Shown: in pieces, positions 41,849-51,330 of the stretch
Numbering within the stretch: the first letter of the stretch is position 1
How the letters are laid out: each line of letters begins with the position of its first letter
NCBI GenBank assembly: GCA_002104945.1
Contig: MCFH01000009.1
Coordinates: 62,001-126,000, forward strand
Source of the DNA: Piromyces finnis finn
Lineage: Eukaryota; Fungi; Neocallimastigomycota
Direction of reading: 5' to 3'
Length of the DNA: 64,000 nt
Program-made: the position numbers and the translations under genes
Notes under the pieces: model-generated
What the model was told of the DNA's origin: nothing
The model's database searches: none
What the model saw: only the letters and a program-made list of their open reading frames with translations

Positions 41849-42371
41849 TTCTAGCTATTTATCCACCACCTTCTCTGGCAGATCTTACAATCTGATTAGC
41901 TAGATAATAATGTTAAATTAATCCTAAATTTTAACTGTCTATAAATATTGGTTCATCATAGTAGACTAATTTTATCTTCCGCCATATAAGAAAAAAAAAC
42001 TTAAAAATAATATTTCAGTTTAAAAAATAAATATTTATTTTAAACTTTTTATTATTATTTTCTTTTTTTTTATCTTTTTCTAGTATTATTATTATTATTT
42101 CTCTTTTTTTTTATTCTTATACATTTATTTATAATCAATCATATTTAGTTATGATGATAAAACAAGCCTCTTAACAACAAAACCATAATACTATTTAATA
42201 TAATAATAATGTCAAAAAAAAATTAATTAAAAATAAATATATCAAATAACTTTAAAAATCTAGTATTGTTATTTTATTAATAATCATATGAAGAGAAATA
42301 TTAATATTATTATTAGTAGCAGTATTGTTATTATTAACTATCATCACTACCTTTATTAGTAATAATTAATA

Positions 42372-42392
42372 CTAATTATTATTATGATTATG

Positions 42393-42427
<35 letters not shown>

Positions 42428-42485
42428 GTTTATGTTTATTATTATTATGTTTATTATGTTTATTATGTTTATTATTATTATTATG

Positions 42486-42541
<56 letters not shown>

Positions 42542-42563
42542 GTTTATTATTATTATTATTATG

Positions 42564-42628
<65 letters not shown>

Positions 42629-42629
42629 G

Positions 42630-42673
<44 letters not shown>

Positions 42674-42674
42674 G

Positions 42675-42712
<38 letters not shown>

Positions 42713-42765
42713 GTTTATTATTATTATTATTATGTTTACTATGTTTATTATTATTATTATTATTA
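42372..42765. repeat. Compound microsatellite: (ATT)n punctuated by ATGTTT
   Basis: About 390 bp of ATT runs repeatedly interrupted by ATGTTT. It produces the poly-Ile and poly-Asn ORFs in the track. Confidence 0.92.
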
Positions 42766-44382
42766 GTGGAAAGGATCAAAAAATCAAATTAAAATTAAAC
42801 TTCAATTTTTATATAAAAATAGTATTATTAAAAAATGAAGAACAGCATATGTAAATAATTTAGATTTATTAAAAATATGTATAATCCTAAGGATTAAAAA
42901 AATAAACAATACTAAAATATATATATATATATATCAACCAATAATTAAATAAATATCTATTTAATTCAAAAGAAAAAATAATAATAATAATAATAAACCA
43001 TAAAAACCTTTTTTATAATTATTATTCTATTATGACATTTTGTTTGATGTTTTTTTATTATTATATTTTATAGTTTTTTGTTTTTTAATACTCAAAAATA
43101 ATTAATTTTAATTATAATATGTCTTTTATTTACTTTTAAAAAGTTAATCATCAAAAAATTACTACATTAAAAATAGTCAAACAAATAGTCCTTATTCAAT
43201 TATTAATTCATTTATTCTCATTAAAAATAACTTGAAATTTCGGTAGATAAAATTTTGAAAAGTATACAATATTTATATAAAAATTATTATTCTTTAATTA
43301 TATAAAAAACACATAATAAAATTAGTTGTATTACTTTGAAAATACTCAACTTTTAATGATTTATCTATTGAATATCAAATGCTTTTTTCGTTTATTAAAT
43401 AATTATAGTTGAATTAATTCATTAATATTATATTTAAAATCTTGATCTTTTTTTTTTATATCCCTTTTTTAAATTAATTTTTTATTAATTCAAAAAAAAA
43501 AAAAATGGTTGAAATTTAAAATTTAATTTATCTATAAAAGGTTAAATTTGAGCTAGATTTTTTTAATAGTTGGGTGAAAAGATGTGAATCGTATAATGAA
43601 TACTATGACTTTTTTAATTTTATTTAACAATTCATTTCATTACTATATTAAATTAAAATAATAATAATAATAATAATTAGTTATTTAATTATCATTTATT
43701 ATTTATTATATTTAATTCTTTAATGTTTATTTATTATTATAATATTATTTTTTAATTAATTAAATAAGTAATTAATGTTTCTATTAGATTAAAAAAAAAT
43801 CAAAACAATAATAGTAAATCAAAAAAAAAAAAAAAAAAGTAAACTTTTAATAATAATTAAAATTATATTTAATTTGCTTCGATTAAATCTACAAAACATA
43901 CACCTATATTATAATAATAAATATAAATTTAATTAAAAAAAAAAAAAAAAAGAAATGTAAGCAATCATCATGAATCACTTCAATATTCTTTTAACAAAAT
44001 TACTAATCAAAATGAAAAGAATTTTCAAAATTTAATCATGAACTAATAATTATATATCATTATGTTAAAAAAAAAAAAAAAAAACTTTAAAAAATATATA
44101 ATTATATAATCAATAATAACTTAAGTGAACTTTCTGGGCATGGCTACTAACCAAATATTTTTTTAAAAAAACCCATAAATCAGTCTAAAAAGGAATTTAA
44201 ATGCTTTTTGATTAGAAAATTTTTAATATATAAATAAGAATACCAATAATGAATAAAAATATTATAAATATTACATTTTATTTATAAAAATTAGAAGTTT
44301 CTACAAAAAGGATATATAACATAATAAATTTTAATATCTAATTACTTTATGGTCTAACCACATTCTTTTTTGAAATTGTTAT

Positions 44383-44490
44383 TGTTATCAGATTTATTAA
44401 TAAGATTTTATTTATTTATATTTACTTTTTATTATATAAATATTGTTAACTTCTTAAATCTTTTGAAATAACCAGAGTAATATAAATTTT
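44383..44490 (-). mobile_element. Degenerate LTR fragment related to the adjacent copia LTR
   Basis: TTTTATTTATTTATATTTAC...TATAAATATTGTTAACTTCTTAAATCTTTTGAAATAACCAGAG aligns by eye to the LTR core TTTTATTTATTTATATTTA...TATAAATATTGTAACTTTCTTAAAATCTTTT...AATAACCAAAG. Confidence 0.55.
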
Positions 44491-44692
44491 TTTAAAAAAA
44501 TTATAAAACTAAGATATTAATATTTTTTTTGCTTATATTATTATGTTAAAAACTTTTAAACTGCAGCCTCTTTATTTTATATAAATAATAAACAATTATA
44601 ATTTAATACAAATTTCATACTATTTACAGTAGGAAATATATGTATTATTCATTAAAAAATAGTATGATATGAAATATAAAAAATATTTAGTT

Positions 44693-44927
44693 TGTCAGAT
44701 AAATTTAGTTTACACTTAAATTTATTTATAAAACTATTTGGGTTTTTATAATCTTTTATTTATTTATATTTATTTTATAATATAAATATTGTAACTTTCT
44801 TAAAATCTTTTTATTAAAAAATAACCAAAGAATAAAAATGTAGTACAATATTAATTTATAATTTTATAAAATACAAATACATAAAAAATACATAAAATAT
44901 TATTTTGGAATGTATTTTATTTTCACA
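44693..44927 (-). repeat. 3' LTR (235 bp)
   Basis: On the minus strand it reads TGTGAAAA...ATCTGACA. I saw no mismatch to the 5' LTR on manual comparison. Confidence 0.96.
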
Positions 44928-44934
44928 CTCCCCC
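44928..44934 (-). promoter_or_regulatory. Polypurine tract
   Basis: GGGGGAG on the minus strand directly abuts the 3' LTR. Confidence 0.9.
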
Positions 44935-44949
44935 AAAGTTATAAATTCA

Positions 44950-47900
44950 TTATTTGTATTTATATAATAAACTATCTCTAAATATTTTCATTTTATTTTT
45001 ATTCAAGTATTTAGTAAAACCATCTGCTAAATTTTCTTCTGATTTTATATATTCTAGACTGATTTTATTTTCTTTAATTAATTCTCTTACTTTATGGTAC
45101 TTAATATCAATATGTTTTGACTTTGGATTAATCGTTTCATTATTTGCGTTGTAAATAGTTGCTTGATTATCAATATTGATTTTTAAGCATTCTTCCTTTA
45201 TTTTTAATTCACTAAAAATATTTCTATACCACAGAGCTTGCTTTGAGCATTCACAAAGTCCATAATATTCTGCTTCGGCGGTTGAAGTTGATACACATTT
45301 TTGCAGTTTTGAGTACCAGCTTGTTGGTCCATTTCCCAATAAAAATACAAATCCAGTGGTAGATTTTCTTGTTTCTTCATCTCCCCCATAGTCTGAATCT
45401 ACAAAAATCTTCAAATTTAAGTTTCTTTCAAAACGGATTCCATAATGAGGATTTTCTTTCAGATATTTGAATATTTGTAATACATTCTTCCAATTTTGGA
45501 TAGTAGGATTTTGTGAGAACCTAGATGCTTTGGTTACTGAAAATAAGATATCTGGACGAGTACCTATGGCTAAATATAAAAGACTTCCTATTGCAGCTCT
45601 ATAAGTAGTAGGGTCAAAAGGCTGATTGAGTTGTTCATCATTCTTGATTGGTGTAGTTGTCTTTGATCCTCTGCAGTTTTCTAAACCAAATTTGTGTAAT
45701 ATATCCTTTAAATACCTTTCTTGATGTAACAAATACCCATCTTTTAACGTTTCTACTTTGATTCCTATGATGAAATTTGCATCACCAACATCCGTGATAA
45801 CATATTTCTCTTTAATTAATTTAATAGTTTTATCTATTTCTTCCTTTTTACCAGTTATTAGGATGTCATCAACATATATTCCAACTAAACATACTAATTT
45901 ATTGTTTTTGGTCTTTATAAATATGCATGGTTCGCTAACTAATTTCTGAAATCCTAGTTCAATGAGAGTATTGCTGATGTTGTTATTCCATTCTCTTGCT
46001 GCTTGTTTTAAGCCATATAATGCTTTATTTAATTTCCATAATCCTTTTTTATACATTTTATCTCCTTCAGGTGCTTTCATATATATATCTTCCTTTAAAT
46101 CTGCATACAAATATGCGGCCTTAACATCTAATTGATGGATTTTATAGTTATTAATTGCAGCTATTCCTATTAGGATTCTTAATGAGTCTTGTTTTAGAGT
46201 AGGAGAAAAGGTCTCATTGTAGTCTTCTCCATATTCTTGTGTAAAACCTCTGGCTACAAGTCTAGCTTTGTATTTTTCTATCTCACCAGTGCTATTCCTT
46301 TTTATCTTAAATACCCATCTTGAATCAATAATATTGGCGTCTTCTGGAACTTCATCTATTCTTTTGAACACTTTTCTTTCTTTCATATTTAGCAATTCGG
46401 CTTCTATTGCTTTTATCCACTTATCCTTATCTTTTCTTTTAAATATATCATTATAGGAATTTGGCTCCTTGATTTGTGCTATAGTTAGCGCCACTTCCTT
46501 AATTTTCTTCTTTTCTGGTTCATGTTCATGTGGCTTACTAAATTTTTCTTCTATGACATCTTCACTTGGAACAAGTTTCCGCTTTCTTGGGAATTTTTCT
46601 TCCTTTGGTGGATGATTTTCATTTAATTTAAAATTTTTATTGGATTTTAATTTTCTATTTAGATTTCTCTTATTCAAAAAATTTTGTTTTGATAATAACT
46701 TTTTCTTATCAAAAAATTTTTTCTTAGATTTATCTTTATTGATTGGATCTTTAATTTCATTTTTATTTTTTAAATTTCTCAAATTATATTCCTTTTTATT
46801 TTGATTATTTAAATTACTTTCTTTTTCATCAGAAATATTTTTAAATTTGGACTTTTCTTCAGGAATATTGATATTTTCTTTATTCAAATTTCTTCTTATT
46901 TCATTCTCATTAATAGGTATGTAATTTTTCTTATAATATTCTTCATTCTTATAATTTACTTTTACATTTGAATAATTATTTTCTATTTCTTTTCTATTAT
47001 TTTTATTTATATTATTTTTGACACTCTCAATATTTTCAAAATCAATTTTCTTTCTTGTTCCTAAATCAATGTCAGGACTCAGGATATTTAAAAAATCATT
47101 ATTGTCAATTTCTCCAGTTAAATCATTTATCTCCATTTCTGATGGTGTTTTTAATACTTCTTCAATTAATTCATTTTTATTTACAATGTCTGAATTTTCT
47201 TCTATAAAATAAACATTTCCTTTTGCATTCAGGTATTTATTATTCCTTTTATTATCCTTTGATATATTTGAATTGTCTTTACTGTTTATATTTTTATTTT
47301 TCTTGTCGTCATTTCTCTTTATATTCACTTCTTTAATTTCACAAATTTCAGTTTCGTCAGCACTATTATATTTTAAATTATTATATTTTAAATTATTTTC
47401 TTCCAAGGTAAAGTTATTTATATTGCCGTCGTTACTTCCTGAAATGTCATTATTGTTTTCTTTTTCTTTATTGGTTTCACTTACAGATTCCATTGAAGTA
47501 CTTATTTTAATTTCTTTATTTTCTTCCATTTCTTCAATTTTCTGGTAATTATTTTTGTTCAAACGTTCTTTTTTCTTTTCTTTTAGTTTAATATAGTCTA
47601 AGAGATTTAAGTCTTCTTCTTCTGAGTCTTCTATACTCATATTACTATCATTAGTGTCCTCGCAGACTTGCATAAAACTTTCAGAACTATTATTTTTTTC
47701 TTTATTTAATAGTGACGTGAGCTTATCCAGCTTTTCTTCTATATTTCTAAATTTTTCTTCATAATTTACTTCTTTTAAGTCTTCTTTATTACTAGTTTTA
47801 TCATTGAGTGTTTCTAGGTTTTCATTCATTAATTTATCATTTTCATTTGAAATGTCCTTTTCTTTTTTGTCTTTATTGTTATTGTTTTCATTTTCTTTAT

Positions 47901-50403
47901 CATACATATAATTAAAGTTCCTTACTTGAAAAGTTTCTGTATCTTGACTATATGTTTCATTATTATTTTCTTTTTCTAAATTATAATTGTAGTCACCAGG
48001 TTCTTCTTCTAAAAAACCTACGACTCTTTTCACTTTAATTTTCCTTGATTTTATGTCGAATATTCTGTATCCTACTGAAGATTCATCATATCCGATAAAG
48101 ATTCCCTCCTTAGTTTTGTCTTGAAATTTTGGAATGTTACTGTCATCTAAATAATACACTTTACATCCAAATACTCTTAAATTTTTATAATCAACTTTTC
48201 TGTTGTACATTAATTCAAATGGTATTTCACCATTAATTCCACTGTGCGGAACTCGATTATGAACATAGTTCGCTGTTTTCACAGCATCTTCCCAAAAGCG
48301 ACGACATAACCTTGCGTCCATTAACATTGCAGTAGCAGTTTTTATTAACTTTCCATTGAATCTTTCTGCTCTTCCATTCTGCTCCGGATTTCCAGGGACG
48401 GTGAATTGTTGAGTTATTCCATATTCGTTACATAACTCCTTGAAGTTATTAGAAGTGAATTCAGTTCCATTATCGCTTCTAAGATATTTTACTTTGGATG
48501 ATAATTCATTAGTAGTTTTATTCAGCCAATTTCCAAATTCTTTGAAAACATCACTTTTATTCTTGACAAATATTACCCATCCATATCGACTGTAATCATC
48601 TAAGATACTTAAAAAGTATACGTTGTCATGAATTGATGGTGTGATTGGACCTACCAAATCGATGTGTACTAGTTCCAAAACACTTGATGCTCTACTATCT
48701 GACCTTTTATGAGGGATTTCTTTCATTTTGCTTCTCATGCATATTGTACAATTGTGAATATTGTTCTTTTCATCATTATTGTTGAAATTCAGATGCCCTA
48801 TTCTTCTATGCCAGTATTCACCATTGTTTCGTACATTATCGCACATTGAGTAATTATTAACTACATTACCTTCTTTGATGTACAAATTGAATACATCATA
48901 TTCATTTGCTTTAACTTCGTATACATTATCTGTTTTCTTATCTTTTATATATGCAAATACATTATTGTTCTTCTCATCAAAGATTATTTGGTAGCCACTT
49001 TTAACTAACTTGGCAACAGAAATTAAATTTCGTTTTACATCTGGGATGTACATTACATCTTCTAATTTTATTGGTTCTTCATTAATAGATCCATTTACTT
49101 CACCCATATGTGTTGACTTTGTAGTCGCTCCATTTGCATAATTGATTGGTTCTACATGTTCAAAAACATTTTTGAGAATTCCTATATCTTTGGTAATATG
49201 ATTAGAAGCACCAGAATCTAAAGTCCATGTAGTAAAACTTGTAGGTACATTTTCACAAGATACGTAATTGCATGATTTATTATTACATTCATCATTGTTA
49301 TTGTCAAATAATGTATTGTAATCAACTGTAAACAAATCTTGATATCCAACTTCTGGTTCAAAGTCTTCAGTGGTTTGTTTATTTACTATTTCACCTGTTG
49401 CTAAAAATGCTTCCTTGCCTTTATTTTTCTCTTTTCTTAGCCTTCTTGTAACTTCTTCTGAAAGTTCTTTTTGAATACGACATTGTTTTACAGTATGTCC
49501 TTTTTGATGACAAAAATAACATGTAATGTTTTGTTTATTTTTGTTATTCCAATTTCTTTCTTCATTGGACTTTTCTTTTCCTTTATTTGTATTTTTATTA
49601 TGATTATTACTTTGTTTGTTGCGGTAGTATTTAGTACTTTCCTTTCTTTTATCACCTTTGTAACTACCTTCAACACTAAAGATATGTCTAATTCCGAAGG
49701 TTTCAGATTTCTCTTTCGGATCAAATTTGTTCATCTTATCTATCATTCTTGCTGTGTCCTTTTTGCATTCTTCCCAGTCTTCATGCTTAAGGACTGTGAC
49801 TTTCCTATATTTTTCTGGTAAGGCTTGATACAGTAAACCAATTTTTTCTTCATCATCTATTTTCACATTTAGTTGTTCTAACTTATTAAAGTTGGAATTT
49901 AACTTATTTACAAATCTTGAGAAACTTTCTTTCGGGTCGTATTTTAAGGAGTTTGTTTCCTTAATAAGCCTATTCTTTCTTTCTATTTTATCCCCTAAAT
50001 AAATGTCTTCTAATAGTTTCCACATTTCGTAGCTTGTTAAAGACCTATCTTGGATATCTTGTTGGCAGTTTGGGCCTAAAGTATACCTAATTAAAAATTG
50101 GATATTCCTATCTGTTTTTAAGTCATCTTCGGTTACGTTCTTATCATAGTAGGTATTGATTTCAAAAGGTGCCTTTAGATATTCTTCTCCGTCGATATCC
50201 ATTCCTTCGTCACTTTTGATCTTTGGGGTTTTGTTTTCATCAACCCAATCTTCAAGACCATAATAATTTAAAATATTCCTCATAAACATTTGCCACGTTA
50301 TGAAATTTTTATTGTTCAATTCATAAGTGACCTTTCCTAGCATAACGGTAGGATCGAATATAGGAATTGATCCAGTATCTCCGTTAGATTTTCTTTTTGA
50401 CAT
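44950..50403 (-). CDS. Copia Gag-Pol polyprotein (about 1817 aa from the first ATG)
   Basis: Zinc knuckle CYFCHQKGHTVKQC; protease WTLDSGASNH; WHRRIGH...CTIC; integrase VHIDLVGP / LDDYSRY / QNGRAERFN; RT QLDVKAAYL and YVDDILI; RNase H FVDSDYGGD, EAEY and NLADGFTK. No stops or frameshifts. Confidence 0.97.
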   Translation of the reverse strand: MSKRKSNGDTGSIPIFDPTVMLGKVTYELNNKNFITWQMFMRNILNYYGLEDWVDENKTPKIKSDEGMDIDGEEYLKAPFEINTYYDKNVTEDDLKTDRNIQFLIRYTLGPNCQQDIQDRSLTSYEMWKLLEDIYLGDKIERKNRLIKETNSLKYDPKESFSRFVNKLNSNFNKLEQLNVKIDDEEKIGLLYQALPEKYRKVTVLKHEDWEECKKDTARMIDKMNKFDPKEKSETFGIRHIFSVEGSYKGDKRKESTKYYRNKQSNNHNKNTNKGKEKSNEERNWNNKNKQNITCYFCHQKGHTVKQCRIQKELSEEVTRRLRKEKNKGKEAFLATGEIVNKQTTEDFEPEVGYQDLFTVDYNTLFDNNNDECNNKSCNYVSCENVPTSFTTWTLDSGASNHITKDIGILKNVFEHVEPINYANGATTKSTHMGEVNGSINEEPIKLEDVMYIPDVKRNLISVAKLVKSGYQIIFDEKNNNVFAYIKDKKTDNVYEVKANEYDVFNLYIKEGNVVNNYSMCDNVRNNGEYWHRRIGHLNFNNNDEKNNIHNCTICMRSKMKEIPHKRSDSRASSVLELVHIDLVGPITPSIHDNVYFLSILDDYSRYGWVIFVKNKSDVFKEFGNWLNKTTNELSSKVKYLRSDNGTEFTSNNFKELCNEYGITQQFTVPGNPEQNGRAERFNGKLIKTATAMLMDARLCRRFWEDAVKTANYVHNRVPHSGINGEIPFELMYNRKVDYKNLRVFGCKVYYLDDSNIPKFQDKTKEGIFIGYDESSVGYRIFDIKSRKIKVKRVVGFLEEEPGDYNYNLEKENNNETYSQDTETFQVRNFNYMYDKENENNNNKDKKEKDISNENDKLMNENLETLNDKTSNKEDLKEVNYEEKFRNIEEKLDKLTSLLNKEKNNSSESFMQVCEDTNDSNMSIEDSEEEDLNLLDYIKLKEKKKERLNKNNYQKIEEMEENKEIKISTSMESVSETNKEKENNNDISGSNDGNINNFTLEENNLKYNNLKYNSADETEICEIKEVNIKRNDDKKNKNINSKDNSNISKDNKRNNKYLNAKGNVYFIEENSDIVNKNELIEEVLKTPSEMEINDLTGEIDNNDFLNILSPDIDLGTRKKIDFENIESVKNNINKNNRKEIENNYSNVKVNYKNEEYYKKNYIPINENEIRRNLNKENINIPEEKSKFKNISDEKESNLNNQNKKEYNLRNLKNKNEIKDPINKDKSKKKFFDKKKLLSKQNFLNKRNLNRKLKSNKNFKLNENHPPKEEKFPRKRKLVPSEDVIEEKFSKPHEHEPEKKKIKEVALTIAQIKEPNSYNDIFKRKDKDKWIKAIEAELLNMKERKVFKRIDEVPEDANIIDSRWVFKIKRNSTGEIEKYKARLVARGFTQEYGEDYNETFSPTLKQDSLRILIGIAAINNYKIHQLDVKAAYLYADLKEDIYMKAPEGDKMYKKGLWKLNKALYGLKQAAREWNNNISNTLIELGFQKLVSEPCIFIKTKNNKLVCLVGIYVDDILITGKKEEIDKTIKLIKEKYVITDVGDANFIIGIKVETLKDGYLLHQERYLKDILHKFGLENCRGSKTTTPIKNDEQLNQPFDPTTYRAAIGSLLYLAIGTRPDILFSVTKASRFSQNPTIQNWKNVLQIFKYLKENPHYGIRFERNLNLKIFVDSDYGGDEETRKSTTGFVFLLGNGPTSWYSKLQKCVSTSTAEAEYYGLCECSKQALWYRNIFSELKIKEECLKINIDNQATIYNANNETINPKSKHIDIKYHKVRELIKENKISLEYIKSEENLADGFTKYLNKNKMKIFRDSLLYKYK

Positions 50404-50430: not shown

Positions 50431-50451
50431 GAGCAATTGAGACTCTTAATC
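50431..50451 (-). promoter_or_regulatory. Primer-binding site complementary to the tRNA-Lys(CUU) anticodon arm (half-tRNA type)
   Basis: The plus strand reads GAGCAATTGAGACTCTTAATC and directly abuts the 5' LTR. GAGACTCTTAATC matches the eukaryotic tRNA-Lys(CTT) anticodon stem-loop as recalled from memory. There is no TGG-type PBS. Confidence 0.75.
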
Positions 50452-50686
50452 TGTCAGATAAATTTAGTTTACACTTAAATTTATTTATAAAACTATTTGG
50501 GTTTTTATAATCTTTTATTTATTTATATTTATTTTATAATATAAATATTGTAACTTTCTTAAAATCTTTTTATTAAAAAATAACCAAAGAATAAAAATGT
50601 AGTACAATATTAATTTATAATTTTATAAAATACAAATACATAAAAAATACATAAAATATTATTTTGGAATGTATTTTATTTTCACA
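50452..50686 (-). repeat. 5' LTR (235 bp)
   Basis: Same sequence as 44693-44927, followed by the TSD TAGTT. Confidence 0.96.
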
Positions 50687-51330
50687 TAGTTTTTTAGTAT
50701 ACTAAAATCTAACCCTAACTTTTATATAAATATTTTATTTTTTATTTATAAAGGTTTCACAATTTTTATATTTGCCTTTAACAATAGATTAATGATCAAT
50801 TATTAATTATTTGTAACTTGAATAGAAATGTATTATGGGTTAAAAGAAAAGATTAATTTTTCGTTATAAAGACGTTATTTTATTGAAATGTGAAATGATA
50901 AAGCACTTTTATTTCTTCATTTTCTTTCGCTTTTTTTTTTTTTTTTAATTTAAAATTGTTTTTATTTCTTTTTTTAGAATAAAAAAATAAAAAATGATAG
51001 TATTAAAAGTTACAACTTTTCTGAACACTATTATCAATATAAATTATAAAAATTCATTTATTGATACATATATATTATATATTTTTAAAGTTTAATTTTA
51101 ATTTATAAATACTTTGATGAAATAGCAATATATAAAAGTTATCATAAATTACATAAATAAATTTATAAATAATAATAATAATTAGAAAAAATAAAATAAA
51201 AAAAGGGGAATCGTATTGTAGATTTTCTATTTTTATATAAGGAAACCATTTTTAATTTTAGGCAAATTATTCAATCAAGCAAGTAAACAAAATTCATCAA
51301 GCCATTGAATTCTTTTTCAAATACTATCAT

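Follow-up and report, generated by a model that had tools for sequence, protein, structure and literature searches.

Half-tRNA primers in Ty1/copia-type retrotransposons

In Drosophila copia and yeast Ty5, both members of Hemivirus (Pseudoviridae), the primer for reverse transcription is the 5' half of tRNA-iMet. The ICTV bases the genus Hemivirus on half-tRNA priming (PMC8515867), and other tRNAs serve in the same way in other Copia elements. Tca2, a Copia element of fungi, draws on an internal tRNA region, in its case of a tRNA other than the initiator (PMC4139406), and its gag and pol are split by a UGA stop (PMC2194720). Among plant lineages, Bianca uses a 1/2 tRNA-Ile while Osser, Bryco, and Gymco-II use a 1/2 tRNA-Met, the choice being a clade character that holds lineage-wide (PMC6317226). 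In Puccinia, Copia elements and Helenus TRIMs have anticodon-loop primers of tRNA-Tyr, Ile, Asp, Asn, and iMet; the Copia elements have switched half-tRNAs repeatedly, and non-autonomous partners share their PBS (PMC10886601). The half-tRNA donors already documented are iMet, Arg, Ile, Tyr, Asp, and Asn (PMC6317226, PMC10886601, PMC4139406). Half-tRNA priming is, therefore, an already known mechanism; what is new here is the tRNA, Lys(CUU), because our search of the open-access literature, made without Repbase, returned neither a Lys half-tRNA primer nor, in a retrotransposon context, the motif described below. Two further points are added, i.e. clade-wide fixation of this PBS in anaerobic fungi and its recurrence elsewhere.

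A complete Copia element with a PBS adjoining the 5' LTR

The window, i.e. the whole stretch of 64,000 nucleotides that was analyzed, carries on its minus strand a complete Copia element with an LTR pair, a TSD, a PPT, and one gag-pol ORF. A repeat search together with an alignment of the two LTR regions placed the 5' LTR (235 nt, TGTG...GACA) at 50452..50686 and the 3' LTR (235 nt) at 44693..44927 of the minus strand, and in the alignment the two are identical across all 235 nt. The same five nucleotides, AACTA, lie beside both LTRs and form the TSD (50687..50691 on the 5' side and, from the LTR-region alignment, 44688..44692 on the 3' side, minus strand), while the PPT, GGGGGAG, is at 44928..44934 (minus strand), directly before the 3' LTR. 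Direct LTRs of the form TG...CA, a 5-bp TSD, and a PPT preceding the 3' LTR are the features of Pseudoviridae. The gag-pol ORF, which was delimited by its open frame and its Pfam domains, has 1817 codons (44950..50403, minus strand, with the ATG at 50403) and encodes Retrotran_gag_2 (aa 101-202), Pol_BBD (the barrel of the protease region, aa 392-470), rve (aa 576-672), SH3_retrovirus (aa 732-801), and RVT_2 (aa 1348-1581). The resulting order of Gag, protease, integrase, and an RT with RVT_2 is that of Ty1/copia elements. At least 31 copies of the 5' LTR, PBS, and leader of this family are present and are 97-100% identical. Because the LTRs are identical, the ORF is intact, and there are at least 31 near-identical copies, the family appears to have been active recently, and we conclude that the window element is an intact, recently inserted LTR retrotransposon of the Ty1/copia type.

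The 5' LTR ends in CTGACA, and the PBS, GATTAAGAGTCTCA (50438..50451, minus strand), starts at the next base and is followed by ATTGCTC; read on the minus strand, the junction runs ...TTTATCTGACA and then immediately GATTAAGAGTCTCAATTGCTC. The roughly 50 nt from the 5' LTR to the ATG at 50403 contain no TGG and, hence, no PBS of the TGG type. A preliminary description of this locus had noted that the PBS follows the LTR without a gap and that a motif for a tRNA 3'-CCA primer is lacking, and both statements agree with the LTR alignment, in which the LTR ends at 50452 and the PBS begins at 50451, and with the sequence up to the ATG.

Three minor features of the element and its surroundings are recorded here. 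Between integrase and RT, the polyprotein contains ~450 aa of low-complexity sequence rich in Asn, Lys, and Glu (window 46600-48000, minus strand), which makes it ~400 aa longer than the polyproteins of its relatives; this insert is not common to family C (see below), in which tblastn skips aa 808-1269. At window 44397-44487, ~200 bp past the 3' LTR, lies a fragment that is ~80% identical to the middle of the LTR of the window family and that may have been left by a related, earlier insertion. Finally, positions 42246-42900 are occupied by a long imperfect ATT/ATGTTT microsatellite array with a period of 9-12.

The PBS is complementary to the anticodon arm of a host tRNA-Lys(CUU)

Searching the host assembly (56.46 Mb, 232 contigs) with a pattern combining the Lys(CTT) anticodon loop with the T-arm, we found one tRNA-Lys(CTT) gene, near the end of contig C227 (L031:1489-1562, minus strand), which ARAGORN calls as tRNA-Lys(ctt) and which has a T-run downstream. 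Nucleotides 27-40 of this tRNA, TGAGACTCTTAATC, are the exact reverse complement of the PBS GATTAAGAGTCTCA in all 14 positions. They comprise the 5' side of the anticodon stem as well as the loop and reach the second base of the 3' side. Because the PBS pairs with nt 27-40, the primer would end at C40, i.e. at anticodon+4. The PBS is, thus, of the hemivirus type, being complementary to an internal segment of the anticodon arm and not to the 3' CCA end. The full 17-nt anticodon arm occurs once in the genome, every match to it with one mismatch is an LTR junction, and BLAST with the tRNA-Lys(CTT) gene returned only the gene itself. ARAGORN found no tRNA gene in the window.

The preliminary description had identified the complement of the PBS as the anticodon arm of tRNA-Lys(CTT) ending at anticodon+4, and this identification is borne out by the host gene, which contains the motif and in which the complement ends at nt 40. 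Its suggestion that the complementarity runs on into the D-stem (GAGCA...) was rejected because the host tRNA reads GAGCGTGAGAC while the complement of the element reads GAGCAATTGAGAC, so that the match is not contiguous, and because this extension is not conserved between families, conservation ending after base 14. As for a better match to the 3' end of another tRNA, the lack of a TGG-type PBS speaks against one, and a genome-wide Rfam tRNA search scored 63 of 2914 first-look candidates. These 63 candidates included 34 matches of 74 nt with one and the same score and 24 of 72 nt likewise sharing a score, and fetched samples were tRNA-Arg(TCT) and tRNA-Thr(TGT).

With its Copia gene order, single gag-pol ORF, PBS adjoining the LTR, and PBS start at anticodon+4 of an anticodon stem-loop, the window element resembles copia and Ty5, but the tRNA is Lys(CUU) instead of iMet. 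Its PBS differs from the iMet-half PBS GGTTATGRGCCC, which sets the element apart from the users of a 1/2 tRNA-iMet, and the whole genome contains no match for CAGGTTATGRGCCC, the usual iMet-half PBS. Similar to Tca2, it is a fungal Copia element with an internal region of a non-initiator tRNA, yet the tRNA is a different one and gag and pol form one ORF in place of two parts separated by a stop. Lys(CUU) is absent from the list of tRNAs used in Puccinia, and the present host belongs to the early-diverging, anaerobic fungi.

The PBS is conserved across divergent Copia families of the host

The 13-mer core of the PBS has 166 matches in the genome, compared to none for the reversed control. All of the sampled sites (55 of 55) read as an LTR end and then the motif. 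We also considered that the 13-mer matches could be tRNA genes and rejected this possibility, since ARAGORN placed a tRNA at the motif in 0 of 30 scanned loci. The 55 sites fall into 15 context clusters, between which the flanks cannot be aligned either upstream or downstream of the motif. Base 14 is always A, base 15 is A, G, T, or C, and conservation stops sharply after base 14; depending on the cluster, the LTR end that precedes the PBS is CA, TA, or AA. Conservation of the motif, which the preliminary description had proposed to examine in sister copies, therefore holds there and also in at least 15 diverged sequence contexts.

Every family with the Lys-half PBS that could be classified is Copia. 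Complete Copia elements, each flanked by a TSD of its own, represent families A (the window element), C, H, and I; C, H, and I also have their own LTR pairs and PPTs, and their Pol proteins are 30-63% identical to that of the window element. In families B, E, and F, the Copia sequence is fragmentary or interrupted by nested Gypsy inserts. In several Copia families (L059, L064, L065), the LTR termini are TG...AA or TG...TA, and these boundaries were confirmed by TSDs and PPTs.

Relatives of the element carry an iMet-half PBS or, in more than one lineage, a Lys-half PBS

Low-GC contigs from metagenomes and assemblies encode proteins with 52-60% identity to the window element over the RT region, and one Orpinomyces protein is among these; where flanking DNA is present, these low-GC relatives read ...CA directly followed by GATTAAGAGTCTCA. 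The next relatives, outside this AT-rich clade and 31-40% identical over the RT region, have an LTR followed by GGTTATGRGCCCRG, the classical iMet-half PBS. They were found in Fusarium, Cladosporium, Exserohilum, one NCBI assembly (GC 0.37), and one ENA assembly contig; in the Fusarium element the motif lies 14 nt downstream of the LTR end as defined by BLAST, and a Golovinomyces contig, which stops short of the PBS, lies outside this comparison. In these relatives the iMet-half PBS consists of 14 conserved nt starting at anticodon+4 and, therefore, has the same register and the same length as the Lys PBS; specifically, the 14 nt of the window element equal the length seen in the iMet-half relatives L071, L194, L195, and L198. 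Given the iMet-half PBS of its relatives, the window element probably belongs with the Copia elements that a half-tRNA primes, and the choice of tRNA sets it apart from these. The hemivirus-like character proposed in the preliminary description is strengthened by this shared register and length.

In a tree of the RT-RNase H region, all nine low-GC Lys users and the Orpinomyces protein form one clade with an SH-aLRT of 100. The nearest relatives outside the Lys clade include iMet-half users, in a tree whose backbone has an SH-aLRT of 8 and which contains no copia, Ty5, or Tca2 sequences. The clade is comparable to the plant lineages in that one group of AT-rich Copia elements shares one half-tRNA, here Lys, while the hosts and the tRNAs are different.

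A scan of metagenomes with the junction 16-mer gave mostly chance matches inside unrelated genes and, in addition, Copia elements on contigs with a GC content of 0.40-0.53. Two of these environmental Copia elements (GC 0.43-0.47) have the same Lys-half PBS and lie outside the gut-fungal clade in the tree, one of them in a group of ascomycete elements that are otherwise iMet-half users. One of these two elements is complete, with 166-nt LTRs, a PPT, the PBS next to ...TTTTACA, and an ORF of 1475 aa, and the other has LTRs of the form TGTTG...CAACA. The half-tRNA-Lys(CUU) PBS is, therefore, not peculiar to gut fungi, since environmental Copia elements with a GC content of 0.43-0.47 carry it. A single clade of all Lys users was rejected in an AU test that was chosen after the tree had been seen (p = 0.008). 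The position of the two environmental elements outside the clade and this rejection together argue that the Lys(CUU) half was taken up on more than one occasion. These data indicate that, within one fungal phylum, an entire Copia clade can hold to one primer despite deep divergence, and that the same primer can be chosen again elsewhere.

A model for priming by a tRNA-Lys(CUU) fragment

Based on the sequence comparisons above, we consider it very probable that the window element starts its minus-strand DNA from a 5' piece of the host tRNA-Lys(CUU) with C40 at its end instead of from a tRNA 3' CCA end. Specifically, nt 27-40 of the tRNA would pair with the 14-nt PBS after the 5' LTR. The 3'-OH would come from cleavage just past nt 40, the second base on the 3' side of the anticodon stem, and from there the RT would extend into U5-R in the manner described for Drosophila copia and Ty5 of yeast. 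The primer would, thus, be a putative cleavage product, the 40-nt 5' fragment of tRNA-Lys(CUU). In a fourth step, plus-strand strong-stop DNA would copy the primer back to nt 27 only, with a presumed stop at a modified G26. In eukaryotic tRNAs G26 is commonly m2,2G, and m2,2G blocks RT. If copying back to nt 27 occurred in every cycle, the same 14 nt would be rewritten each time, which would explain why they are invariant amid flanks that cannot be aligned. The sharp limit at 14 nt, which Lys and iMet users have in common, would fit such a copy-back stop at nt 27. Two observations count against the priming model: the search found a single tRNA-Lys(CTT) gene, which lies at a contig end, and t6A is the normal form of A37 in the Lys and iMet tRNAs of eukaryotes and would be expected to destabilize the PBS duplex. 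Copia and Ty5 face the latter problem as well. If the model is correct, tRNA-Lys(CUU) would join the tRNAs known as half-tRNA primers.

How the 3' end at nt 40 is made bears on the first alternative, in which the full-length tRNA-Lys(CUU) or its precursor anneals via its anticodon arm in the particle and is cut after nt 40 by the RNase H of the element or by a packaged nuclease, much like the Tf1 self-primer. We regard this as possible but rather unlikely. Two unrelated tRNAs in related elements share the end at nt 40 and the length of 14 nt, and measuring or cutting on the side of the element explains this shared register more easily than two tRNA-specific cleavages by the host; moreover, none of our observations requires a free cellular tRNA half. 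However, an RNA:RNA duplex is not a usual substrate of RNase H. A study by Kikuchi in 1986 reportedly described a 39-nt fragment in copia particles, an account that is said not to give the maker of the cut. Because two different tRNAs have the same end point, a cut defined by the element or by tRNA structure is at least as likely as a Lys-specific cleavage by the host.

A broader proposal builds on priming by the 5' fragment, and we advance it tentatively, as somewhat less than an even prospect. Two or more unrelated Copia lineages may each have captured the tRNA-Lys(CUU) 5' fragment ending at nt 40 on their own, among them the whole Copia clade of gut fungi, which appears to have dropped the iMet half; the common end at nt 40 and the common 14 nt would then mean that the element or tRNA architecture, and not tRNA identity, fixes the cut site. 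If this were true, the primer-cleavage step of hemiviruses would become open to comparative study, and the constant register and length of 14 nt in two tRNAs offer a handle on how the 3' end of the primer is formed and how far it is copied back.

A second alternative concerns the identity of the tRNA, the primer being tRNA-Lys(UUU) or a mixture of Lys isoacceptors in place of Lys(CUU). In its favor, GATTAAAAGTCTC, with an A opposite the wobble base, is present at three LTR junctions of the form LTR(...AACA) (L066, L068, L069). Against this, the genome contains four UUU-type matches vs. 166 of the CUU type. None of the four is a tRNA gene, which implies that a host tRNA with the matching anticodon arm, TGAGACTTTTAATC, is absent from the assembly. 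This argument is tempered in that three patterns for a tRNA-Lys(TTT) gene of any kind gave nothing above the control in the genome, although the genome is AT-rich. We consider Lys(UUU) or a mixture of isoacceptors as the primer highly improbable, and the GATTAAAAGTCTC junctions represent either a tolerated mismatch or a decayed PBS. Even less credible is that the conserved 14-mer is some other cis element (a packaging, dimerization, or translation signal) that matches tRNA-Lys by coincidence while priming occurs elsewhere or by self-priming, as predicted for some Copia lineages (PMC6317226), given that the motif adjoins the LTR in every family, which is the position of a PBS, is an exact 14/14 complement of a host tRNA anticodon arm, has the register of the iMet-half PBS of relatives, and is found at the same place in unrelated Copia lineages of other organisms.

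Annotation pipelines for LTR elements that seek only a PBS for tRNA 3' ends will miss or misjudge such elements, which are abundant in gut fungi.

Non-autonomous and nested elements associated with the Lys-half PBS

Family D (L060:1415-5974) is a 4.4-kb LTR element with the Lys-half PBS; a comparison over 120 nt gave ~98% identity between its LTRs. ORFs of at least 150 aa are lacking, as is similarity to Pol, which makes family D a probable non-autonomous partner of the Copia families; as a non-coding element with the same PBS, it parallels the PBS-sharing non-autonomous partners of Puccinia Copia. A CotH-CBM10 gene lies directly downstream.

In families E and F, Tf1/sushi-like Gypsy elements with their own LTRs are nested inside the Copia sequence. 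We considered that the Gypsy element of family F might share the Lys-half PBS; this was rejected because it is nested within a Copia leader and gag and has its own 606-nt LTRs. The Tf1/sushi-like chromovirus at L062:1704-8005, nested in a Copia leader, has 606-nt LTRs, the TSD TCCAA, and RVT_1, RNase H, integrase, SH3_Tf2-1, and chromodomain regions. In this element ATTACAATAACA spans the end of the 5' LTR and is the reverse complement of TGTTATTGTAAT, which lies ~50 nt upstream inside the LTR, and this potential pairing looks like a self-priming arrangement of the Tf1 style.
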